From positions 124,001 to 188,000 of the forward strand of contig JAPDFW010000081.1 in the NCBI GenBank assembly GCA_028826165.1: DNA of 64,000 nt, in the 5' to 3' direction. Below, one piece after another: positions 28,570-57,211 of the stretch (position 1 is the first letter of the stretch; each line of letters begins with the position of its first letter). Origin of the DNA: Anaeramoeba ignava BMAN. Its lineage: Eukaryota; Protista; Anaeramoebae. Under the pieces are notes generated by a model that had not been told where the DNA came from, did no database searches, and saw only the letters and a list, made by a program, of their open reading frames with translations. The position numbers were made by a program, and so were the translations under genes.

Positions 28570-31500
28570 TCACTTCTTTTTAACAGCAACTGTGTGTGTA
28601 ACGTTAACTGGAACAACACCAGTTCTAATAAAAGTGGAAGTTACTTGATGATGAACAATTTCTTCTGAATTTTGTTTTTTTGAATCCTCCCATTTTTCTT
28701 GTTCACGAATATGTTCCTGCATTTCAATTTCGCGTTCCATCCACATTTGTTTGTTTTGATGGAAACGGTCTGAATGATTTTGGGGAGAATTTTCATTATT
28801 AGTTTCAAGGGACGAATTAGGGGGAGCAACACCATCGAGATCATCCCAATTAGTTTCTGGATTAGAAGGAGGAGGAGGAGGATTGTTGGATCTTCTTTTG
28901 TGTCTCCAGATATAGAAGACGGTTGCGCCGACAGGAATGATTACAAGAAGAGAAAGTAAAAGAAGAGTATTGAAGGGGTTGTTGATGAAAGAAACGGAAT
29001 TTGATTCGGCAAGAACAGAGGAGTTGTTAGGATTCTCGAGAACAGTTCCGAGCTGGAGTGACGAGACGGCAACAGTGTATTGGACCTCGATGTCTTTGGT
29101 CTTGTCGAGATATGTGAAGGGATAGTCAACAGCAACTGGTTCTTGTGTAACCGCAAATGTTGTCCAGTCGATGAAAACTGGTTTGAGAACTTTGCGACGG
29201 AAAATATAAGTCGGTGTTGTTTGGGCTGTTAGTTCCAGTGTTGCTGAGGCGTGGAGTGTAATCGAGTGATCTTCTTTGTTTGTTTCTGAGGTGAGTGAAA
29301 TGGTGGTTGGTGTTCCTGGAGTGATGACGTAGGTAAACGGATTGGCGGTTGTTGTTGTGATTGGGACAGATGCTGACAGCGAATTGATTGTGTCGAATTC
29401 AAAGCTGGCTTGTGCCACGAATATGCGGTAATCGCCGTCGGGTGTGGCAATGATTTCTCCAGTTCCTTCGTAGCTCATTTCGGCGGTCATTGCGTAGGTG
29501 TCTCCAGGTGCTATGTCCATGTATGTTTTGATCATATAAGTGGTTCCGTTGTAAGTGGAAACCAAGATGGCGTCGAAAACTGTGTTGTAGAACTGGATGT
29601 TGGAAATGGATGGCGGGAAATAGAGATAGAAAGTCACATTGTAGGCAATGCTTGATCCCATGTTGACGATGGTGATATTGGAGGTGATTGTTCCAGCAAC
29701 GCCTTCCATAAGAACCTGACTTTCTAAAGGAAGTGAGGATGTCAATGAGCCGATTTCAGTAACCCAGAAGGTGATCAAGATGTTGGGTCCGAAAAGATCG
29801 AGATATCGCGGGCCTGTTGTTGATGTTTGTGGGTTGTTTTGGAAGTCGTTGTAGGTTAGAGTGGAGTTATAAGATGCGTAATTTTGGCCGTAATCGAGGT
29901 TTTTTGAATACCAAATGCATGCGAAGTAGAGATATGCCTGATCGGGTCCTGTTAAACGTTTGAGTGGGAATGTTTCGATCCAATCAAAATCAAATCCGAC
30001 TCGCATCACTCCATCAACAGGCAAGAAGAGTTGTGCATATATGGTTTGTGAAGCAGCATGATCCAAGTAGTTTAAGGCGGTAGAAAGACTTTGGTCTTGA
30101 ACAGAGAGTTGGCGCAGATTTTGGACTGCTGTAGCGTTGATGACTCCGTTGGTTTGATATTCCCAATTGCTGTCCATGTATTCGAACAACTTAATAGTTG
30201 ATGAATATCCACTTGTGAAGTATACATTCCCGTCTGCGTCAGGGAACCCAATCATCAGCGATGGGATTGAGAGATTGATGTGAAGATAAAGCAATGAGCC
30301 TAAATTGTGTGTGGCGTATTTTTCGCTGTTTTCGCCTTCTTGGTTGTATTTGTGTGGAGTGGAAGTGGTTTGTGTTGGATCGTTGTAGCAGGGGAGATAT
30401 TGGAAGTACTCGTTGTTTAAGGTCACGTTGAATTCGTGGAGCTTGCTGGTTACGTTTGCGTTTTCCTGGAATGTCTGATGTGATCTCCATAATGTAGTAA
30501 TATATTGCGTGATATCCATCCTTCACAGACGCAGCATTCAAACTGGCGCGATCGTAGAAACTAGTTGCAAATGAGGATGGATCGGGATGCGGATAGATAT
30601 TCATGTATCCCTCAAGTTCAGGAGGAACAATCACATCCATGAATTTGTATTCGGTGACATGCTGAACGTTTGTTGTCAATCGCTTCAAGAGATCGTTGGG
30701 ATTGATTGTGATGTTTTGGAAATCTTCGGAAACAATTGCGTCTTGATACAAGTCCCAGTCAAACCCTGCGTTGTTGATAAACTCGATTTTGGCAATTGTT
30801 TGTGTGCCTGCAGTCGGTTGAAGAATGGATACTGTTGATCCAATTCCAACTGTTACGCAGATGGTTGAATCAAAGAATCCGTAGCAGTTGGAATAAACAA
30901 GATCGCTATATTTGCGATCAATTTCAGGTGCGTCATAAAGCTCGAAAATCTGCATGATTCGAGAAAAGTTGTTGAGAATTGTGGATGCAGGAAGGGTTTC
31001 GAGATACAATGAGATGTGACTTGTTCGAGAGATGACTGAGCGACCGGGGTTACTTATAGAGATGTATGAATTGGGACCACCTGCAGGATTCCAATAAGTG
31101 AATGTTCCTCCCTCAAAGATCTGGGTGTTCAAACTTTCGTATGGTCGTCCAGAAAGTTGGCTCATTTTGAGAATAACATTGACAGTTTCCTTTGAGCCTC
31201 CTCGCAGATTCAATCCGAAATAGAGATAATCGCGCGGTGTTTCTGTGTAAACAACGTTGGGCACTTGCGAGGAAGTTATTGAATCATATTCACTGGCAAT
31301 TTCACATGAGAAATTGGTGAGTCGTGGATCGTTTGTGGTGAATGAGGGATCAATAGGAACAACATTAACTCTGTAAACATTTGAGAGATATGTTTTGCGT
31401 GTGATGCGATTTCCGACATTTAATCTCCAAGGATTGAACTTGCAAGTGTAATAGTTTTTGAGTGCTTCAGTGGTGAGGTTAAGACCCGATACTTGGGAAG

Positions 31501-34500
31501 TCACATTCTTAAGATATTGGAGTCGAATCCATCCGTAAGTGTATCCTGGAAGAGTAAGATCATCGCCATTAACTGATATGGAATGAGACTCGTCTTGACC
31601 CACAAGAACAGTGTCATCGCGATTTCCAAGATTGTCTGAGAACCACCCAGAATAAGGCAAAGTAAGAGGATTTGTGTTACTTGACGAATAAGTAATGGAA
31701 TACAAAAGACCCTTCCAAATCGGGAAAGAAAGAAGATTCTGAGGACGCAGAACAGGTTGGTCGATGTTGGGAAGAACGTTGTCCATGTGATATGGGAAAT
31801 CCTTTGCTAATGGCTGTTTGGTCGTAATCGGAATTTGTCATATCCCACATGTCTTGAGTAACGTATGAATCTGGATAGAAATTCTGCACATTAGGCGCGT
31901 AATTCCAGGTTGTTGTTAAGTTGTTTGTGCGTGCAGTCAGCATAGGAAGAGACAAACTTACGTTCTGACAGGAATCGTTCTGTGATTGATAGTCTTGCTC
32001 AGTGCACAACCGAAGATAATAAATGTCGGTTTGTTGTTGGGAATCTAACTGATCTCCAGAAAGATAGACGCTTCCATCAGTTGGTTCTGAATAGCACACA
32101 CCATATTGAGCAGAGGCGGTTTGTGAAACATAGTTATCAATAGAATCATCATTGATCAAAAGTGTGGAATTGATTGTTGAATCGTAGAATTTGGGCACGT
32201 ATTGCTCATACTTGTTAAATTCCCAGTAATTGTTGGATGAGCATACTGTCGGATCAAAGAATTTCGGGAAATTGTTTGTAAGCTTCATTTTCACAATAAC
32301 ACTCGCGTATTCGCTTGTTAACCAAATAAACTGTGGTTCACCTGAGGGTTGCGCAAGTTGGAAGGTTGTTGTGAGTAAGAAGCTCTTTGATGGAGGTGGT
32401 GAAGGAGACATCGAGACAAACATTGTCTGAATTGGCTGCACCCATCTCCTTCCGAAAATATCTGTCCATTCCAATCGAGTTGTTTGGCTGCAGGATGCCA
32501 TCATTCTGCTTGATGAAGAGGTGAGATATTGTTGAACAGGGATTGTCGAAGTTCCCAGTTGTGTCATACTTGTGAAAGACGAACTCGAAACAACCATTGA
32601 TGGTTCTTCTGTGGGATGCAATTCCATAATTCCGTAGACTGATCTATGCATTTTGAGTTCTTGCATATACACTCCAAAATTAACAAATGGTTGCAAATAT
32701 TCGTTGGGGTTCACGTATGATTCGTTTGAATAAGTTCCGCGATGCAGCACAAACTTGAATTTCATAGCGGGAAGAGAAAGATATGCTGTGCGAGAAATTG
32801 ATATTGATTTGGTGCTACTGAGTGTGTACTGCTCAAATGCTGGTGTGGTTGTGAGATTGTAGATCATGCCCCACACTTGCATATCCAAAGAAAGGACATC
32901 CGGACTTGTGATGTTCTCAATGTTGATCTGTATCTTGTTTATGCTTGAAATGTCTTGGTTGGTGATGTTCCCTCGCTTGAACATAATCACATACGTGAAA
33001 TTTTCTGTGTAGTATTGAACATCATAAATCGCCGCTTCATCACAAGAGAATGTGATTGCCTGTGTGTAGTTTGTTCCGGACCTAAACTGAACAGTATTAC
33101 TTAAATTGAGAACAATCATACCTCCTTTCTGTGTTGCATATCCATCCATTTCGGCAACAACTCCGTGAGCATACACAAACTGGATTTCTGGGTATTCAGC
33201 ATATGATCCATTCTCGTCAAAATACATAAGATCTGCGACAATTGTATCGTTGCTTGCGAAAGGCACCAAATAATGTGTGATTTCAACATCTTCTGAGTCG
33301 ACAAAATCTGTGTAAAATGTCTTGACCCGATCGCAATTCATCAATATCTCATTGGAATATTGGTTTGCACTCAATCCAGGATATTGAGTTGAATCGAAAA
33401 AATCCTGGAACCATCACCTCTGCAGCAGCATTGTTCAATCCAGGTGTGCAATTTCCTGTGGGAGAAGGATATCGGTCAATAGTGATGACTGTGTTGCTGT
33501 CTGTGATTCCTTCAGGAAGAGGAACAGTATCAGATTCGAAGAAGTATATATCATTTCGAACAAAGGTGAGGTTGGCTTTGGAATAGTTCTTTCCAGGAAC
33601 TGGGTTGCTGATATTCTCTACTGCTCCATAAAATTCAAGAGAGCCTTCGATTGTTGTTAAATCACAGAAAACAAGCAGTCTTTGTGTTGCGATATCGTAA
33701 TAGACATCTGCATCTGGAGCATAAGTTTGGCGAACAACAGTGCCAACAGATTCAATGTTTGTCTGATAAAATGCGTTTTCGATGTCCGAAAGTGAATATC
33801 CAAGAGAAGTGTTGTATTCCCAGAGATCTTTGTGGATTTTCACAGTTGTGTCCCAATCCACAGCAAGAATGGAGTGAGCACCTGCAAGGCTTGGATAGAA
33901 TAACAAGTCAAACTCTCCTTCAGAAGTAAACGGAAAGATGAATGGAGTGCCTGCACTTCCTGTTTGATAATAAGTCCAGTCAAGAACAATTTCATGTGTG
34001 ATTACTCCCTGTTGACTGCCATCGAGTAATGGAGAAATCAAAGGAACAAAAGCGTAATGCACAACATCTGTAGCAACTGTGTTTTCTTTGTTATTCATGT
34101 TGAGTGTGTTTTGCACGTAGTTTCCTGATCCTTGCAGCGGATATGTTGATGATGGAGAAGGATTACTATCTGTACGCAATACAGCTGCTGCTTTGGTATT
34201 GAAATACACACCGCCGATATTGTAGAATCGTGACTGATTGGAAGGAACATCAAAGTATTCATAAGAATTGTACAACATCATAAGTGAATAGAGTCCCTGA
34301 GTGACTAATGGGTCATACACATGGAAGGTGACTGTGAAATTCTGTGAAGAGATCGGCGCAATATCAGCAGAGCAATTAAGATAAATGGATCCATTCAATT
34401 TGGATGAAGGAAGACTTGTGTAATTGTATCCAAATTCGCACTCTTCAGGAATATCCACCCATTCAATACCTTTGACCAAGAATGTGTAGAAACGGAATCC

Positions 34501-36275
34501 TTCCAAAGTAGATGAGAACAAGTTTCGATAGTTCAAATCAATGGTCAAAGAAAACGATTCCAATGCGGGAATGCTGTATTCTGAGTCAGGAATGAAAACC
34601 TGGAGAATCACAGGACGTGCAAAAGCAAGATAGTACATATTGTACCACCATTGATATGAACTTGATGTGAGTGCTGGTGCTCCTATTGTCATCAGTATCT
34701 GGCCATGCCCATATTTCTTGTACATTTGCAAAACATAATTGTCACTTGGAACGTGTGGAACAGTTCTTAGCCAACCTTGTGAGTCTTTGTACATCAAACT
34801 TGTGCTAACAGGATCGATTCTTGTTAAAACCTGGATATCAGGATCAGGAGTTGGTACGCTAGGCATGTAGGCAAACAAGAACCCCATTTTGCTTACTGTT
34901 CCGTTTGAAGTTGCAAAGCAAAGAGTAGTATGCAAGAACTCCATTTCGTCATCTGTTTCTGTGGCTGTGCAATTTTGAACAAATACCGGATCTGTATACT
35001 GTGATATGTATCCGTAAGTTAAGTTGAAAGTGCCTGGCGAAAGAAGCCCAAGTAATTCAAGCAAATATGGTCCTTTTCCACTTGAAACCACGTATCCTCC
35101 ATTTTCAATATAAGTTTCAAGGTTTTGAAGCGTTGATGAGTTGAATCCACCTGCTGTTTGGTTTTCAGTTCCTGAAACAAGATCAGGGAACACAATCAAG
35201 CTGAATTGGTTCAATCTTCCCAAGTAGATATCATCAGGAGTGAGATATAAGAATTTGGTTGAGCCAATGTAAGGGTATCCCAAACTAATCCATTGAGCCT
35301 ATTAAATGCAACAAACCAATTAATTAATTAATTAAAAAATACAAATAAAAATAAAAATAAAAATAATTTACATAAGTTAAACACTGAGTATATTTGCCTA
35401 AATAAACCCTCAAACTGTCACAATAATAAGCTCCTTCATAAGCAAGATTCTGGGTATATCCATTAAACTAAAAAAAAATAGATTAAAAATTAAATTTGAA
35501 TTTGAATTAATGAAAATTGTTTTGCTTTATTTACCAATCCTTCATATCGGAAAACTGCCAGATCTCCATCAAAAATTGCTTTCGATTTGGAAATGTTTAA
35601 TGTGTCAACTACATCATAATAGATGAAATAATTCGCTTCATCAGATGGATTTGGCATACCAGATGTATCAATATTGATAATTGCTCCTTGATCAAATTCT
35701 ATTGTTTCCTTTATTTTTCAAAAATCCAAAAAAAAAAAAAAAAAGCGAAAAAAAAAAAGCGAAAAAATTTTTCGTAATTATTACTCAAAAAAAAATAAAA
35801 TTAATAATTTTATTAATTTTAACTTACATTATCAATAGTATGACTAAATGGATAAGGATAAAGAATAAAACGTGAATTATATTTAGAAATGCGCAGAAAA
35901 ACATATTCATAAGCTTGTCTATTTTAGGGGTGAAAAAAAAATTAAAGGAAAAAAAAATCGAATTAAAAAATTAAAAGGAAAAAAATATTTCTGAATTAAT
36001 TCTTACTGTATGCAACTGGAATTTTGCAACGGACCAAAGGGAATTATTGCTGGCTGCATTAATTGGTTGTCAGTTAAACCTTTTTGTGTTTTTTGTACGT
36101 GTTTGTGAGGAATATAATTGAATTTGTATTCATGTTTTTTAGGTTCTGGATTTTCAATTTGCTGTTCATATAATTTTTGATAATTCAATTCATTTAAAAC
36201 ATCTTCAATTTCCCCTCCAAGAGTCGATGAGAGGAAGAAAAGCACTAAAATCAAAGCTAAAATCTTGTTTCGCAT
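28570..36275 (-). CDS. ~2,450-aa type I membrane/surface protein of unknown function; 4 short 5' exons, then a 6.7-kb exon with three apparent +1 frameshifts
   Basis: Signal peptide MRNKILALILVLFFLSSTLG; GT-AG exons lead in frame into ORF 35283; four consecutive overlapping minus-strand ORFs of the same composition (many N-x-S/T sites); single TM (LLLLSLLVIIPVGATVFYIW), then RHKRR and a Pro-rich tail. Confidence 0.8.
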
Positions 36276-44188: not shown

Positions 44189-46755
44189 TTAAATTCGGAT
44201 TTGATAAGATCCTGCTTTTGTAATATAACGAACCCATTTAACAGCTTCATAATTAGATTTCTCAAAAACTTTCAAGAATCGAACACGAAGACCTGAGGAT
44301 GTATACATTGGAACCTGAAAATCCATTGAAATTGGAGGTCTACTCCAAGTTTTATTCGAATCAACTCCTCGAATCAAGTTAATTTCTGCATTAATTGATG
44401 ATTCAGTTCTTCCTGGAAATCGTTTAATTCTAAAAAATTTTTTTTGATTGATTGATTTAAAAAAAATAATAAGATGAATTTTTTCAATTAATTTTCTCTT
44501 CTTCAAAATAATAAAACAAAAAGTTAAAAACCTCCAAACAATCGCTTCTGCTGTTGGATCGTATTTCGCTCTACCGATTGTTGTTGATGTTTTTGTATCT
44601 GCTGTGTTTTTTGGAACTGGAATTCGAATGACTACTTTGGATGCAAATAATTTTTCCGAAAACTCTGCTCTGATTGTAACTTTTGCCTCAACTGTAGATC
44701 CTCCTTGTTCCTTCACAACTGGCATCACTTTAAATGGTAACATAACATTTTCTGTGGTTCGATATCTTTAAGACGAATATTTAAAATATAAATAAAAATA
44801 TATAAATATTTAAATATTTAAAATATTTTTTCTTTCTTTTTAATTGAGTACTTCATTAACTCAAAAACACCATCTGGAGGAATAAATGAGATTGTACGAT
44901 CGCTATCAAATTTACCTAGCTTGACACATTGATGGAAAGTGCAATCATCAAGTGCAATAGCTGAATCTCGACTTTTTTTTTTTGAATTAAAAATTTGATT
45001 TTCCAAAAAAAGAAAAAATCAATTTTATAAAAATAAATTGAGAAATTTTTTTGTGATTATTATATTATACGCTTTGGATGTTTTTGTGGTTTGTTCTTCT
45101 ATTGCAACTTTATCGTTGAGACCCAATTTGCATTCTGGCATTCCTGATAATTGTGATTTCATAACAATTACTCCTGCAACATCAGATTTGAGAACATTTC
45201 CTGAGTTTGACATTAAAAGATTTACGCTCTCAATTACATCAAGAAATAGTTCATTTCTTGGATAAAATATATCATCTTTTCTCCATCCAATAACTCCAGT
45301 TGCCTTAATTGCAATTTTTTTAGCTGTTTCTGCAGAATCCTTTTTTGTTTTATTTTTTGTTTTAATTTTTTTTACTTTTTTAATTTATATTATTTTGAAT
45401 TTTTACTTTATCTTGTCGGAAGTTTTCTTGATTGATATATAATTTCAGAATATCAGTTGAAGAATTTTGTGGATATCCGAAATCGATAGTTTCTTTAATT
45501 TTTTCAATAAAATTCAATCAGAATCAAAATAAAATAAAAATAAAAATTAAAATTCATTTTAAAATTAAAATTAAAATTAAAATTAAAATTAAAATTAAAA
45601 TTAAAATTAAAATTATAATTAAAATTAAAATTAAAATTCATTTTAAAATTAAAGATTAAAATTAAAATTAAAATTAAATTTAAAATTAAAATTAAAAATC
45701 ATTTTAAAATTAAAATTAAAATTAAAATTAAAATTAAAATTAAAATTAAAATTAAAATACCATCTAAAATCTCATATATTAGAGAAAAGTTGTTTCTAAT
45801 TGAATTCTCATTAACTGAACCAAAATAACTTTCTAAAACACTAACTAAAGTTTTTAAAAACTCAAAAACCAAAGCTGCATTAACATTTTTTTTGGTTACT
45901 GCAACAATAAAAATATTGCTAATTCTTTGAAACATAAATATTGTATCTTCCATTTGTTTTATTGGGCATCCAATTTCTTTTGCTGCGATAACTTCAATTC
46001 TAAATGATTCAGCAAAATTTTTACTAATAAAATTTTTTTTTACAAAATTAATAAATAAATTAATAATTAATTTTATAAATAATTTTGTAATTGATTTTAT
46101 AAATAATTTTATAATTAATTTTATAATTAATTTTATAATTGATTTTATAAATAATTTTATAATTAATTTTATAATTAATTTTGTAATAGATTTTATAAAT
46201 AAATTAATAATTAATTTTGTAAATAAATTTAATAAATAATTTAATAATTAATTTTATAAATAAATTAATAATTAATTTTATAATTAATTTTATAATTAAA
46301 TTTATAATTAATTTTATAAATAAATTAATAATTAATTTTATAAATAAATTAATAATTAATTTTATAAATAATTTTATAAATAAATTAATAATAAATAATT
46401 TTAATTAAATTTAATTTTATAAATAAATTTTAAATAATTAAATTTATAAATAATTTAATAATTAAATTTATAAATAATTTAATAATTAAATTTATAAATA
46501 ATTTAATAATTAAATTTATAAATAATTTAATAATTAAATTTATAAATAATTTAATAATTAAATTTATAAATAATTTAATAATTAATTTTATAAATAATTT
46601 AATAATTAATTTTGGAAATAAAAATTGAATGTTTCAAATATAAATTGAAATAAAGAAAATTAAATAAATAAAATTATTTACGGAATATCTTCTCGATACA
46701 TTCGAGAGATTAGAATTGATCCTTTTTCATTTATAAAAGTAATTGCAGAAATCAT
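44189..46755 (-). CDS. AP2M1: AP-2 complex mu subunit; ~7 exons
   Basis: [45 protein letters not shown]...[91 protein letters not shown]. Confidence 0.95.
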
Positions 46756-46835
46756 TATAAAAAAAAAATAAAAAAAAAAAATGAAAAAAATGAAAAAAAT
46801 GAAAAAAATGAAAAAAAAAAATTATTATTATTATT

Positions 46836-46906
46836 CTCCAGCACTGGGAATTGAACCCAGATCAATTGATTTAGAGTCAACTACTTTGCCATTAAGCTAT
46901 ACTGGA
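46836..46906 (-). tRNA. tRNA with CTA anticodon (UAG-decoding, amber-suppressor type); charged amino acid unknown
   Basis: Reverse complement TCCAGTA-TA-GCTT-AATGGCA-AAGT-A-GTTGA-CTCTAAA-TCAAT-TGAT-CTGGG-TTCAATT-CCCAG-TGCTGGA-G folds into a full cloverleaf with U8, A14, G18G19, U33, TTC and A58; oligo-T Pol III terminator about 15 nt downstream. Confidence 0.92.
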
Positions 46907-47092: not shown

Positions 47093-48554
47093 ATGGAAAA
47101 AAGAATAAGAAATAATAAAATGAAATTACAAAAAGAAAAAGAAAAAGAAAAAGAAAAAGAAAAAGAAATAAATGATGAAAAACCCAAAAATGAAATAAAG
47201 AAAAGACCTAAAAGAACAAAACAACGAGTTTTAATGTTATCTTCAAGAGGAATATCAACTCGATATAGATTTTTAATGAAAGATATTTTTTCACTTCTTC
47301 CTCATGCAAAAAAAGATGCTAAACTTGAAAAAAAAAATAGTCTTACAGAAATTAATGAAATTGCAGAAATTCTTTCTTGTAATAATTGTATCTTTTTTGA
47401 AACTCGCAAGAAATATGATCTTTATCTATGGCTTTCTAAGTGTCCAAATGGTCCTTCAATTCGTTTCAAAGTTTTTAATGGTATTTTGAATATTATAATT
47501 AATATTAAAATTATTTCGAAAATTAAAATTATTTTGAAAATTATTTTTAATATTAAAATTCATTTTCAAAATTATTTTGAATATTAAAATTATTTCCAAA
47601 ATTAAAATTGATATTAAATTCATTTTCAATATTAAAATTGATATTAAAATCATTTTCAATATTAAAATTGAAATTAAATTCATTTTCAATATTAAAATTA
47701 TTTTGAATATTAAAATTGAAATTAAAATTAATATTAAAATTATTTTGAAAATTAAAATTGAAATTAAAATTATTTTGGATATTAAAATTGAAAATTAAAA
47801 TTATTTTGGATATTAAAATTGAAAATTAAAATTCATTTTCAAAAATTTTCAATATTAAAATTCATTTTCAAAAATTTTCAATATTAAAATTCATTTTCAA
47901 AAATTTTTAATATTAAAAATCATTTTGGATATTCATTTTCAAAAATTTTCAATATTAAAATTCATTTTCAAAAATTTTTAATTTTCAAAAATTTTCAATA
48001 TTAAAAAAGTAAGTACAATGGATGAACTCAAATTTGTTGGTAACAGCCTAAAAGGCTCTCGACCAATTTTAACATTCGATCAACAATTCGAAACAACAGC
48101 ACATTTCCGATTAGCAAAACAAATAATGACAGAAATATTTGCAGTACCACAAGGATTACGGAAATCCAAACCATTTATTGACAAAGTGCTTTCATTTATG
48201 ATTGTAGACAACAAAATTTGGTTTAGATGCTACCAAATCATTTGGAAAGAACAAAATATTGCTCAACAAGGATTAACAGATAACGCTGATTTAAATGTTC
48301 TTGAAGATGAAAATAATTTACTTGAAATTGGACCGCGTTTTGTTCTCCAAATTGTTCGCATTTTCTCTGGAAGTTTTTCTGGTTCAACTCTTTATTCAAA
48401 TCCTGACTTTGTTTCTCCTGCTCAAATTCGATTTTCTCAAAAACAAAAAAAAGTTAATAGATTTTATGCTAAAGCTAAAGCAAGAGAACAAAAACAAGAA
48501 CGTGATTCTCAAATTGTGGTTCCAAAAGATGGTCTTGAAGATGTTTTTAAATAA
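47093..48554 (+). CDS. BRX1: Ribosome biogenesis protein Brix/BRX1; 2 exons
   Basis: VLMLSSRGISTRYRFLMKD, DLYLWLSKCPNGPSIRF, TMDELKFVGNSLKGSRPILTFD, LLEIGPRFVL...IFSGSFSG.TLY.NPDFVSP. Confidence 0.96.
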
Positions 48555-51815: not shown

Positions 51816-54800
51816 TCATTTATAATATTTAGATTTTGCTCCAATTCCTGAAGTTTGCAATTTATAAACATTATTCCCTCTTTTCAATAAATAACTATGA
51901 AAATTCAAATTATCCACAAAATCTTGAAAATTCCCAACTTGTAAACCAATAGATTGAGCCACATTGAAAAGTTCTTGAAGAGTGTACAAATTATTATAAG
52001 TTTGTTCAGAACGGCGGTTTAATTCATTGATGAATCTATTGACTTCATTTTTCTTACTAATTCCACTTCCACGAGAAGGATCAATTTGACCGAATTCATC
52101 AAAAAGAGTATCTGAAAGAGATTCGCGCATAATTTCAATTGCATCTTCAGCATCTTGACGAGTAACATCTTCTCTCAATTCGGCTTTTGCTTTGGCCTCT
52201 GATAGCCGAATCAAGGATTCAAGTTGTCTTGTTGTTATTGGTGTTGAGTTTGAGTTGCGATGCTTTGCGCGGAGATTAAGATAGAAGTCCTGGATCACTT
52301 GCTTGGCCTCTTGGGTCAAACCAGGAACAACATATTGTCTTGCATATGAAATGTATTTGCGCAATAGCACTGTTGGAATTGGATCCGTTTTGTTACCCTG
52401 AATCAATCGTGAGCGTAGTGTGCTTTTTTCATCTCTTTCAGGAAGTCCTCCTAGCATCAAAGAACTTTCTATGGAATTGCTTATGCTACTTTGTGTGAAT
52501 TTTTCATGCGCTTTATGCTGCGCTTTTGTTCTTTTGATCCGTTTTATATTGCTTTCTTTCCCGTAAAATTGGGAATAAATTTGTGAAGATTCTTTTGTTT
52601 GTTCTTGTGATTTCTTTTGTTTTTCTTTTGTTTTGGGTTGAGTATGAAGCGCCATAACATGTGCTGATAAAACTTCATCTCGCGCTTCATCTGGTCGGTC
52701 TAGTAAAATAAATACTAGATCAAATCTCGAAAGAAGTGCTGTTCCCATCTTTAAATTTTCATGCACTGTTTTGGATCGATTGTAATGTCCTCCAACTGGA
52801 TTTGCTGCGGCAATTATCGATGTTCTTGCTGGTAAATTGCATACAATCCCAGCTTTCGCTACTGAAACACTTTGTTGCTCCATTACTTCTAATAATGCTT
52901 GATGTTCTGTTGTCATTTTGTCAAATTCATCAATGCAATTATGCATGATAATTCCGTTTGATAGGAAGTTATTAGTTCCTTTCATTGTAAAATCGTAAAC
53001 GTATTCTATATTTTTAATTTCTTGTTTAGATGTAATTTCGTCAAAGAATATCCCATTTTTTAAATTTATATCTCCAACACAAATCTTATCTCCAACTTCA
53101 ATTTCGTTCACATACACCCACTTCATAAACTTGCTTTCTTCACACCCATTTTTATCATACTTCAAAATTTCATTATCTTCTGTTAGTTTAATTTTTCTTC
53201 CTGTTTTGCTAACTAATAAATATACTTTTTGTTTATTTAAAATCTTAAAAGCACGCTTAATTGCAAAAAAATCAAGTTTCCCGCTTATTAAATCTAATCC
53301 ATAAATTTTAAATTCTGGAAATAATTCTGAGTTCTCTTCTCTTGCATCTTTGAAAAGTTCCCCAAATGTTTTCTTCTCTCCATTTTCCAAATAAAACTCC
53401 GAATCATCTGTTGTACAACAAACTCCTCGATCTCCTAAAACAACTGCTCCCGCCTCCAAAATATAATCTCCAGATGAACTCTCTTTCATTACAGTTACTG
53501 TGTTATGAATAAAAACTCCGTTTACAAGAAAATTATGTGATCCTTCAATTGTGAAATCATATACATAAGGATATTTAGTCTCTTCTAAATCTATAGAAAT
53601 AATTTTACTCCATTCAACTTCAAATCCCTCTTGAATTATCATCTTGCTCTTTTCTTTCTCTTGTTCTTTGGAAACTTCGAAGCTCAAAAATTTTGAATCA
53701 TAATTTTGTTTTGATGTTGCTATCAAATTCCCAATATTCAAATCAACTGCTTTTTTCCAAATTAGATTGCTTATATTCAAAACATAACAATCGCGTATTT
53801 TCAGTAACAGTAATGTTTTCCCCATTTTCTAATTGAATAGATACCATATGATTTGGTGATTTAATTTTCCAAAACGCTTCAATTTTTTGTGGTTTAATTT
53901 TTAACGAAGAATCATCCAAAGAAGTGACTAAAAATTTCTCAATATCTGGTATTTCTTCATAATTAGATTTATCATTTTCATTTTCATTATTATTATAATT
54001 ATAATTATTCAATTTTGTACTATAAACTCCATCAGCTTCTTTTTGGGGTTTACCCTTTGTAAACGCGGTTTCTACAATATCACAAATTTTATAGCTTTTC
54101 CCATTAGAACTATTAAAAACAACAGAATCAGGAGCAACACACAATCCAGATGATGTTGTTGTATTTCCACAAACATATACTCCTCTTGGTGCAATATTTG
54201 CAATTGATCGAAGCATTTGTGAATTATGTGTTACAGTGCAATCCTCAAGTAAAAATCTTCCATTCCGATTAATTTCAAATCCACAATAATCACAATATCC
54301 TTTTTCTTCTTCACAAACAATATCAATTCTATTCATGAGTTTGTGCTTTAATATTTCTTTGTTGTTATTATCATATGCTTCATAATTTTTGTATTGTTTA
54401 TTTGATATTATTCCATATTTAAATTGCAAAGGTATTTCTTCAATTCTTTCTGAAAATATCTTCAATAAATAAATTCCTTGATTTGAATCTTTTGATAAAT
54501 TCATAGTCTCAATATAAAATTCATATCCAATAAATTTTAATAAATCTGCAACATCTTTTATTAATTTTGAAATTTTGGTCATTCTGAATTCCAAACTTTT
54601 TCTTTCATTATTAATTTTAATTCCAGAAGAAAAAATATTAGAATCAATCAATCCTGCAAGTAAATTTAGTTGATATTTTGGGCAATTATATTTATATTGA
54701 AAGGGAATATGCTTCTTCTTCTTTGTTAAAATATCGAGTTTCTTCATCTTCTGAAAAAATTCTTGTTTATTCGCTTTCAAAATGCATTGAATTTCTTGCG

Positions 54801-57211
54801 AAATTGTTTTTCTTAATAATCCATAACAATTAAGTTCATTAGATATTTTTGGAAGCATTTCAAAAAAATTAGATTCATTATCACTTCCAAGCCAAAGTCC
54901 AATTAAATAAGGTTCAATATTTACTCTTTTCTTAGGGAAAATAACAGGTACTCGAAATGCTTGATATTTTTGTTTAAATTCTTCAGACATACCTATATAC
55001 TCTTCAACAGAAATGTCCAAAGTATATTTTCTTTCATATTTACATTGTAAACGAATCGCTTTCTCAAGAGCTTTACTTTGATTTTGATTTTGATTTTCTT
55101 TGATTTTGTTTTTGTTAATTGGAATTCGTTTTATAATTGTTTTTTTATTTGTATCCATTTGAGAATTGATTAAAATTTGATATTGCTTTGCTTTTTCATC
55201 CCATCTTAAAATAGTTTTATGAAAAGAATCTATCAAAGTTAGTAAATGATACTTATTAACCTTGAAATCAGCTCCAAAATAATTTTTAATTTGAAACATT
55301 AAATCTTTTCCTTTTGAAATTGAAAGGACGATTCTTTGTTTAGAATCATCTCCCATTAATTTATCTCCAACAATAATATTTTTAGCTTTTTTTGTTACAC
55401 CTGAACTCATTAAAATCTTTGTATTTGGTGCCAAACATTTCCCTTTTAATTTTGATTTTGATTTTAATTTTGATTTTAATTTTAATTTTGAATTTGATTT
55501 TGATTTTGATTTAAATTGATTTTGATTTTAATTTTAATTTTAATTTTAATTTTGATTTTGATTTTAATTTTGATTTTGATTTTAAATTTGATTTTGATTT
55601 TGATTTTGATTTTGATTTTAATTTTGATTTTAATTTTGATTTTGATTTTAATTTTGATTTTAATTTAGATTTTGATTTTGATTTTGATTTGATTTTGATT
55701 TTGATTTTGATTTAAATTGATTTTGATTTTGATTTAAATTGATTTTGATTTTGATTTTAATTTTAATTTTAATTTTGATTTAAATTGATTTTGATTTTAA
55801 TTTACCTAATCCAGGATCTCCAACTACAAGAACATGAGGATCACTTCTAATTGATAAATTACCTTTGCTTTCATTAGCAGAATGTCGAGAACCTCCAAAT
55901 AAAGCAAGTGTCATCCCTGCTTTTACCATTTCATGCCCAAAAATTGAAGGACAAACTGAATTCACTATCAAACTAAACAAATTTTTCTCCTCAACAATTT
56001 CACGAATTGCATATAAATCAGTCAAAGAAAATTGAGGAAGAATCAAAGAACTATTATCAGTATTTTTTTCAGTAATAATCGAATGCACATTTACACAAAG
56101 ATAAAACATATTTTGCTGTTTTGATCTTCCTCTTCTTGGGTCTTGACTTTCAAGAGTAGTAACTTTAACAACACCAGAAACAATAACAACATCTCCAGGA
56201 ATACAAGAATCAACAAGATCCTCTGTTAGTTCACAATCCTGGAGTCTTGGAACACGACCTGAATCAACTTGATCATCTAGAAGCATTTCTTGAATTCTTA
56301 TTTTTTGCCAATCAAAGGTAACTGCTGAATCTCGATCAGGTTGAAAAGCATGACTTTTGCATCCAACAGAAGTGCAAATTGAAGGTGGATTGAGTTTCCC
56401 CTCTTTGAAATGACGCCGTATTCTTTGACTACATTTCAAACAAATAAAATCCATTTCTCTAACCATTGGTTTAATTGAACCAACTCTAATCACAGTTCCT
56501 TGTATTGATACAAATTTTTCAATGTTATTTGATTTAATTGCTCGAAGTTGTGTTAAGGGTTTCCAATTATATAATCTGACTGTAAGTTTTGGAAGAGGAA
56601 TATTAAACTTTTTTTGTTTTTTTTTCTTTTTTTCTTTAGAATTTTGATTTTGATTTTGATTTTGATTTTGATTTTGATTTTGATTTTGATTTTGATTTTG
56701 ATTTTGATTTTGAATTTCATTTTGATTTTGATTTTGATTTTGATTTTGAATTGTTTTTTTGAGAGAATTAACAATTCTAAAAAGAGCTAATCCTAATGTT
56801 TGAAAAACTGTTTCTGGTTGATGATATAAAACTTGTCTTAAATTTTGATGTTCTACTTTTTTTTCTAAAAGTTGAAAATCTAAATAAAGAACATTTGAAG
56901 TATTTAAATCACTCTAAAACAAACATAAACATAAATATAATCATAAATATAAATATAAATATAAATTCAATTTTAAACTGTTTTACTTCTAAATATAATG
57001 ATTCATTTTCTTCAAAAAATTTTTGGAATTTTTGTATTAAAATTAATCTAGGATCTTCTTTTTGAATATTTTCTTGGAAATCATCTGGAAAATATAAATT
57101 CCATCCAAATGTTTTTTGAGATTCATTTAAATTTAGATTTAAATCATTTTCTGAATCTGAATCTGAATCATTTATAAAACCAAATGTATCTTTCATTGAT
57201 CTCATTGTCAT
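51816..57211 (-). CDS. MCM8: MCM8 helicase precursor with three inteins; 4 exons; one apparent +1 frameshift inside intein 2
   Basis: GWNLYFP N-terminus, GRVPRLQDCELTEDLVDSCIPGD, CPSIFGHEMVKAG. After intein removal: GDPGLGK|SQML...VYVCGNTTTSSGL|TVT...LEAGAVVLGDRGVC|CIDEFDKM, then ALLSRFDL and ITTRQLESLIRL. Confidence 0.95.
52938..53417 (-). mobile_element. Intein 3 (mini-intein, 160 aa) immediately before Walker B
   Basis: Starts CTTDDSEFYLENG, ends YVYDFTMKGTNNFLSNGIIMHN followed by Cys-IDEFDK. Confidence 0.93.
53502..54141 (-). mobile_element. Intein 2 (mini-intein, ~213 aa, 640 nt = 3n+1) at GL|T
   Basis: Starts CVAPDSVV, ends YVYDFTIEGSHNFLVNGVFIHN followed by Thr. Confidence 0.9.
54223..55437 (-). 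mobile_element. Intein 1 (405 aa) in the MCM8 Walker A motif, with a degenerate LAGLIDADG-type endonuclease domain
   Basis: Starts CLAPNTKILMSSG, block B VNKYHLLTL, PYLIGLWLGS and LLAGLIDSN motifs, ends FLLEDCTVTHN followed by Ser. Confidence 0.93.

Follow-up and report, generated by a model that had tools for sequence, protein, structure and literature searches.

The window analyzed here, that is, the whole 64-kb stretch of Anaeramoeba ignava DNA, belongs to a genome assembled into 147 contigs (42.8 Mb, 22% GC) and carries clearly eukaryotic genes, among them those encoding the major vault protein, an intein-interrupted MCM helicase, the ribosome-biogenesis factor BRX1 and the mu subunit of a clathrin adaptor. 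The two latter are transcribed divergently, and the 335-bp gap between them, an ordinary host context, houses the sole tRNA gene that ARAGORN finds in the window (Table 1), denoted here as tRNA(CUA) after its anticodon. The first-pass annotation of the window, made from the letters alone, had taken this gene as a possible sign of an amber recoding system, in which UAG would be a sense or specially recoded codon. In the Anaeramoeba literature examined, the genetic code of the host, its stop codons and suppressor tRNAs are not discussed, and the sole statement on host tRNAs is the tRNA count given for A. pumila (a species whose GC content is 52.7%).

Table 1. Features of the tRNA(CUA) locus and of its surroundings in the 64-kb window.
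Feature	Position	Strand	Basis
tRNA gene, 71 nt, anticodon CUA (reads UAG)	46836..46906	-	ARAGORN; Rfam RF00005; genome DNA search
Anticodon C34-U35-A36 in the 7-nt loop C-U-CUA-A-A	46872..46874	-	ARAGORN (anticodon position 33/71); sequence reading
A-box-like Pol III promoter element, tRNA positions 8-19, fits TRGCNNANNGG	46889..46899	-	Sequence reading
B-box GGTTCAATTCC, fits GGTTCRANNCC	46847..46857	-	Sequence reading; genome pattern scan
11-T run, likely Pol III terminator, beginning 15 nt past the tRNA 3' end	46811..46821	-	Sequence reading
Short T-rich tandem repeat directly adjoining the tRNA 3' flank	46749..46825		
Gene for the mu subunit of a clathrin adaptor, with several exons; its ATG lies some 79 nt downstream of the tRNA	44189..46757	-	ORFs; Adap_comp_sub proteins as top matches of the C-terminal exon
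Two-exon gene for the ribosome-biogenesis factor BRX1, divergent transcription	47093..48554	+	ORFs; Brix/BRX1 homologs at E around 1e-44
MCM-family helicase with inteins, one bearing a LAGLIDADG-type endonuclease block	51816..55434	-	
Four successive long ORFs (515-649 aa) in different frames, overlapping by up to 280 nt	28570..35283	-	

The gene models for the adaptor mu subunit, as well as those for eRF1 and GlnRS considered below, were read exon by exon, with the exons left unjoined. In an exhaustive library search, the top representatives matching the adaptor-mu exon were plant genes. The BRX1 product shares 46% identity with the A. flamelloides protein; at the A. flamelloides BRX1 loci the neighbors are others, no CUA tRNA was found, and synteny is broken. 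Elsewhere in the window, the intein-laden MCM gene agrees with the published "massive intein content" of Anaeramoeba, which includes three inteins in the MCM8 of A. ignava BMAN (PMC10710043). The four overlapping ORFs listed in Table 1 are rich in Ser, Thr and Asn, appear to encode segments of secreted or surface proteins, and may be parts of one gene of very large size, interrupted by frameshifts or short introns.

The structure of tRNA(CUA) is canonical throughout. Rfam family RF00005 matches it over the full length of the model (positions 1-71) with 67.1 bits (E=2e-12; gathering score 29), inside the 50-77 bit range of the other tRNA genes of the genome. The acceptor stem has 7 bp, with one G-U pair, and direct reading of the sequence gives U1-A72, C2-G71 and C3-G70 which, together with the discriminator G73, make up the Glu/Asp-like acceptor end already pointed out at first pass. 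The D stem has 4 bp, including G10-U25, and closes a 7-nt loop with A14, G18, G19 and A21; in the Rfam and ARAGORN alignments the anticodon stem has 5 bp and the variable loop 4 nt, and the T stem, of 5 bp, carries the loop UUCAAUU. Each of the 21 stem pairs is either Watson-Crick or G-U, and U8, A14, G18, G19, A21, U33, G53, T54, T55, C56 and A58 are retained, so that the cloverleaf, the four paired stems and the D- and T-loop bases that characterize the elongator tRNAs of RF00005 are complete. The claims that an intact UAG-reading tRNA gene lies at this position, and that its anticodon, read along the minus strand, occupies 46874-46872 (on which sequence reading and ARAGORN agree), are therefore borne out.

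Type 2 promoters of Pol III have well-established A-box and B-box consensus sequences, and elements fitting both are found inside the gene. Downstream, the 61 other tRNA genes sampled in this genome carry a run of at least four T at an offset of 0-29 nt, with a median of about 4-5; the T-run of tRNA(CUA), at +15, lies beyond that median, and since the genome is 78% AT it is weak evidence for a terminator. In all, tRNA(CUA) is a true tRNA gene of the Anaeramoeba nucleus, of Pol III type.

When the 71 nt were searched against the DNA of the whole genome, only the gene itself was returned, whereas most of the sampled tRNAs of this genome are present in 2-3 copies each. A genome pattern scan for a CUA loop followed by a B box yielded no second CUA tRNA, the two other candidates being non-tRNA sequences, and equivalent scans for tRNAs with UUA or UCA anticodons found none, their matches corresponding to ordinary Ala, Leu, Lys, Ser and Tyr genes or to non-tRNA DNA. 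Pattern scans of metagenomic and viral sequences gave nothing carrying the 3' half of tRNA(CUA); the suppressor tRNAs recovered were all of phage type, and their acceptor stems are unrelated. The search for further copies and for a close paralog advocated at first pass thus ended, genome-wide, with a single-copy gene that is, over its full length, at most 71-73% identical to any other tRNA. That stems so perfect coexist with such divergence suggests that the fold has been under selection.

The identity of the gene was addressed by comparing 60 tRNA loci from the genome in a structure-consistent alignment, in which body identity excludes the anticodon arm. tRNA(CUA) falls, like the Glu, Gln, Asp, His and Gly tRNAs, into the short class, whose variable loop has 4 nt, and its body is closest to that of Glu(UUC) (0.69), followed by Glu(CUC) (0.61), Asp and Cys (both 0.59), the third Glu type (0.57) and Gln (0.46); among themselves, the three Glu types range from 0.65 to 0.78. 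Glu therefore ranks first, by a small margin over Asp and Cys. In addition, U1-A72, C2-G71, G73, the length of 71-72 nt and the 4-nt variable loop are common to tRNA(CUA) and the tRNA-Glu genes of the genome, and although the anticodon is not YUC, as it is in tRNA-Glu, a single change converts CUC into CUA. Glu is thus, from these sequence comparisons, our best guess for both ancestry and charging, though the margin is small. The resemblance to tRNA-Gln that had been perceived in the anticodon arm and variable loop did not survive the comparison: the Gln(UUG) and Gln(CUG) genes, with 96% similarity to each other, both possess G1-C72 and A73, and on this acceptor difference and a body identity of only 0.46 a Gln origin is rejected.

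The next question was whether UAG is read as a sense codon. A CaaX prenylation box must form the last four residues of the protein, so Ras-superfamily GTPases offer exact C-termini, and 70 genes of this superfamily, nearly all with a CaaX box, were read to their 3' ends. Their stops are TAA in 42 cases, TGA in 25 (36%) and TAG in three (4%). The three genes ending in TAG (contig C101, 228050-229040; contig C104, 229051-229851; contig C90, 166650-167429) encode intact domains and have the TAG immediately after the CaaX box, which indicates that TAG terminates; read-through would lengthen the products by 9, 25 or 43 residues, most of them hydrophobic, and abolish the CaaX signal, and no nearby in-frame back-up stop was found after any of the three. 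It can be observed, as a separate matter, that TGA ends more than a third of the sampled genes despite the 22% GC of the genome, whereas TAG, of equal base composition, ends very few.

The search for in-frame TAG pointed in the same direction. When the ORFs of at least 200 codons in the window were delimited by TAA and TGA only (n=21), TAG appeared in frame seven times, always within 23 codons of an ORF end, while in the other two frames of the same ORFs it occurred 76 and 47 times. Across the genome, none of 150 Ras-domain matches contained an in-frame TAG, and among 134 kinase-domain matches TAG was seen in four, none of them genuine. One lies in a DYRK-like kinase gene (contig C8, 4976-5869) that is nearly identical to another (contig C98, 13760-14659); two compensating frameshifts around subdomain VI of the C8 copy create the false in-frame TAG, the true frame having no stop, and this copy is either a young pseudogene or the product of a homopolymer assembly error. 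The other three kinase cases are intron acceptors or a frame slip, and the TAGs flagged in GlnRS matches are likewise intron acceptors. Hence, no genuine in-frame TAG was found in the approximately 55,000 conserved codons of these 284 Ras and kinase matches, a sample in which the rarest sense codon, AGG, amounts to about 1 per 1000 codons. Nor was any genuine case found of a pair of long ORFs bridged by TAG in about 246 kb of DNA from the same genome (approximately 0.6% of it).

The rarity of TAG, which the first-pass annotation had correctly noticed, has a broader basis. In the window, no trinucleotide of the same composition is scarcer than TAG/CTA, which occurs 595 times (TGA/TCA, 2827 times) and reaches only 0.59 of the Markov-1 expectation. 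The three TAG among 28 TAG plus TGA stops fit the genome-wide TAG:TGA trinucleotide ratio (binomial p=0.46). Since the share among stops matches the ratio among trinucleotides, the scarcity of TAG is a general compositional feature and not one specific to stops. Within the sampled DNA, the genome uses the standard code and UAG is a rare but real terminator; full reassignment of UAG is effectively excluded, and the proposal that it acts here as a sense or specially recoded codon finds no support in the conserved genes in which it was sought.

Two eRF1 paralogs are encoded in the genome. Copy 1 (contig C34, 33995-35700) keeps the GTS motif and E55, reads TATNIRN in the TASNIKS loop (K63R and S64N, at an exon junction), has Ala at residue 70 and carries YLCDSRFH in the YxCxxxF region; copy 2 (contig C94, 67944-69400) also keeps GTS and E55, reads SSAKRIKS in the loop, has Ser at residue 70 and carries YRCDNRFH in the YxCxxxF region. 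Both have an intron at the same K63/S64 position, and in both the TASNIKS loop is non-canonical. The G of UAG is contacted by T32 of the GTS motif, a residue that is lost in Iotanema along with the reassignment of UAG (PMC5304391); it is unaltered in the two A. ignava proteins. In turn, Ala70 restricts the decoding of UGA, not that of UAG, in Euplotes eRF1 (PMC3025575). With GTS intact and Ala70 tied to UGA, the peculiarities of these release factors do not point specifically at UAG. Of the motifs singled out at first pass, the NIKS loop is altered in both paralogs, and the intact GTS speaks against a change at UAG. Given the effect of Ala70 on UGA, our analysis raises the possibility that the recognition of stop codons has been split between the two copies; in this genome, TGA ends 36% of the sampled genes.

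An additional aminoacyl-tRNA synthetase, for which a search had been advised at first pass, did not come to light: the genome contains one GluRS gene and two near-identical GlnRS genes, and no divergent extra Glu or Gln synthetase was found in it. The GlnRS genes (contig C59, 485548-486409, and contig C1, 1347358-1348484) share about 95% identity over the catalytic exon. Identical copies of many Ras/Rac genes are also present on different contigs, seven Rac-like C-termini of our sample being identical, and, together with the GlnRS pair, these copies suggest recent segmental duplication or uncollapsed haplotypes.

Many aberrant tRNA-like genes occur in this genome. A dense array on contig C104 (286764-294071) repeats one and the same body of acceptor, D arm and T arm (G1-C72, A73) with varied anticodon arms, namely Gln CTG, Asp GTC and ATC, Met CAT, Trp CCA and Glu CTC with an oversized loop, and all its members score between 50 and 77 bits with Rfam. 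On the minus strand of contig C126 (427264-427339) there is a tRNA-like gene of 53 bits with an Ala-like body and an 11-nt anticodon loop, which ARAGORN called Leu(TAA) with a 4-nt intron.

The explanation that best integrates these observations, and to which we give about even credence, is that tRNA(CUA) is a low-abundance natural amber suppressor in a standard-code genome. In this scheme, the gene would be transcribed from its internal A and B boxes, and the transcript would end at the downstream T-run and receive a CCA tail. The product would then be charged by a synthetase able to tolerate A36; GluRS is favored because the acceptor end and the body are closest to those of the tRNA-Glu of the genome, in which case the tRNA may insert Glu. 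Once charged, it would compete with eRF1 at the approximately 4% of genes ending in UAG and cause some read-through, the cost of which would be small, and the suppressor tolerated, because such stops are few. The anticodon is complementary to a stop codon still in use, as expected of a natural nonsense suppressor, and the intact tRNA structure, the score within the range of working genes, the Glu-like body, the intact GTS motif and the evidence that UAG is a real stop all count in favor. The single copy, against 2-3 for most sampled tRNAs, and the distant T-run count against it, as do the role of the anticodon in charging by Glu and Gln synthetases and the many aberrant tRNA-like genes, both considered below.

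The main rival, possible rather than probable, is that the gene is silent or unused, i.e., a divergent single-copy tRNA, probably a former minor tRNA-Glu whose anticodon mutated to CUA, that is either untranscribed or not aminoacylated. The anticodon is normally among the identity elements recognized by GluRS and GlnRS, and a tRNA with CUA may consequently be charged poorly by them. The Glu codons, moreover, are still covered by two tRNA-Glu(CUC) and two tRNA-Glu(UUC) genes, and UAG closes intact CaaX genes that read-through would damage. Because aberrant tRNA-like genes abound in this genome, including arrays in which one body bears oversized loops and a variety of anticodons, an odd tRNA gene is from the outset less likely to be functional, and the single copy fits as well. 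What silence does not explain is the lack of any decay: stems, invariant bases, A and B boxes, T-run and Rfam score are those of working tRNAs, and an unexpressed gene that has diverged so far should display mismatches, unless the anticodon change is very recent.

Less likely still is a dual or gene-specific use of UAG, with a few programmed in-frame or read-through UAGs, or with an "ambiguous intermediate" on its way to reassigning UAG, helped by altered release factors. A dedicated and intact cognate tRNA is indeed present, TAG is the rarest stop (4%, compared with 36% for TGA), both eRF1 paralogs deviate at TASNIKS (TATNIRN with S70A in one and SSAKRIKS in the other), and a CUA anticodon lets UAG change its meaning independently of UAA (PMC5304391, PMC11687900). 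However, neither the conserved codons nor the scan for bridged ORFs revealed a genuine in-frame TAG, the apparent cases being a frameshifted duplicate gene and intron acceptors; the share of TAG among stops fits the trinucleotide bias; GTS is intact and Ala70 has been linked to the loss of UGA recognition, not to that of UAG (PMC3025575); and the three UAG stops lack a nearby in-frame back-up. It is accordingly a long shot that A. ignava represents a living ambiguous intermediate, where UAG would be a terminator and, at the same time, decodable through a Glu-like tRNA(CUA) in a small set of genes outside our sample. The same low likelihood attaches to the companion idea that the balance would be set by two specialized eRF1s, one with TATNIRN and Ala70 (Euplotes-like and biased to UAR) and the other with SSAKRIKS.

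It is very improbable that the CUA anticodon arose through an error of assembly or polishing that conceals an ordinary Glu(CUC), Gln(CUG) or Lys(CUU) gene. A single base decides how the anticodon is read, and the frameshifted near-identical gene copy mentioned above reveals indel differences in the assembly or in the genome; yet substitutions are rare in polished assemblies and the remainder of the tRNA is flawless. A 3-kb stretch with the gene is present in five sequencing runs of two studies, none of them recorded as RNA, an observation that bears on the presence of the stretch and not on the anticodon base.

Finally, a pyrrolysine-type system derived from sulfate-reducing symbionts, with a tRNA-Pyl charged by PylRS, is effectively refuted: beyond the CUA anticodon, the loop CUCUAAA, G73 and a minimum-free-energy fold that can lengthen the anticodon stem, tRNA(CUA) departs from tRNA-Pyl (small D loop without G18G19, no TΨC, 3-nt variable loop, 6-bp anticodon stem) in its normal D arm with G18G19, its TTC-containing T loop and the two bases between the acceptor and D stems, and the PylS catalytic domain (TIGR02367) gave no match in the genome while the Methanosarcina acetivorans control scored above the cut-off. 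The first-pass annotation had itself regarded the D and T arms as unlike Pyl, and rightly so; of the Pyl-like traits it described, the loop and G73 stand, whereas the possible sixth stem pair and the 3-nt variable loop give way to the 5 bp and 4 nt of the Rfam and ARAGORN alignments, and the search for PylRS that it recommended came out negative. ARAGORN does label the gene as "tRNA-Pyl", but this label is assigned automatically to any CTA anticodon and, in eukaryotic annotations, should not be trusted at face value.

The reassignment of stop codons is thought to start with a suppressor tRNA that competes with the release factor, and hardly any organism is known at that stage. The importance of tRNA(CUA) therefore hinges on its expression and charging. 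If it is active, a culturable protist with a standard code, a tRNA(CUA), rare UAG stops and two odd eRF1s would make that stage testable. If it is silent, the lesson is only one of caution: a CUA tRNA that looks intact, combined with a scarcity of TAG, does not by itself indicate a new code.

Compared with known systems, tRNA(CUA) recalls the tRNA-Sup(CUA) of variant-code eukaryotes, such as the tRNA-Gln(CUA) of Tetrahymena or the Leu-type tRNAs of phyllopharyngean ciliates. Like them, it is of canonical cytosolic type, reads UAG but not UAA and has a body resembling that of a normal family, in this case Glu, as in the ciliate Oligohymenophorea sp. PL0344, in which UAG means Glu and the CUA tRNAs are 69-93% identical to tRNA-Glu (PMC10553269). 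Those organisms, however, use UAG widely as a sense codon and usually have several copies of the tRNA, whereas in Anaeramoeba UAG terminates, none is in frame in the sample and the gene is single-copy. Condylostoma, the karyorelictids and Blastocrithidia provide a second parallel, as they combine a tRNA cognate to a stop with the use of that stop as a terminator and have unusual residues in the N domain of eRF1, but in-frame stops are abundant in their coding sequences (PMC4967479). In the Anaeramoeba sample, by contrast, none was found. A third term of comparison is offered by the yeast SUP genes and sup-7 of C. elegans, laboratory point mutants that are nearly identical to the parent tRNA gene. 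They share with tRNA(CUA) a stop-reading anticodon in a genome that still uses the stop, and, as in their case, competition with eRF1 would be expected at a cost in fitness. Unlike them, tRNA(CUA) has no parent closer than approximately 70% in its genome, and it must then be either old or derived from a divergent singleton.
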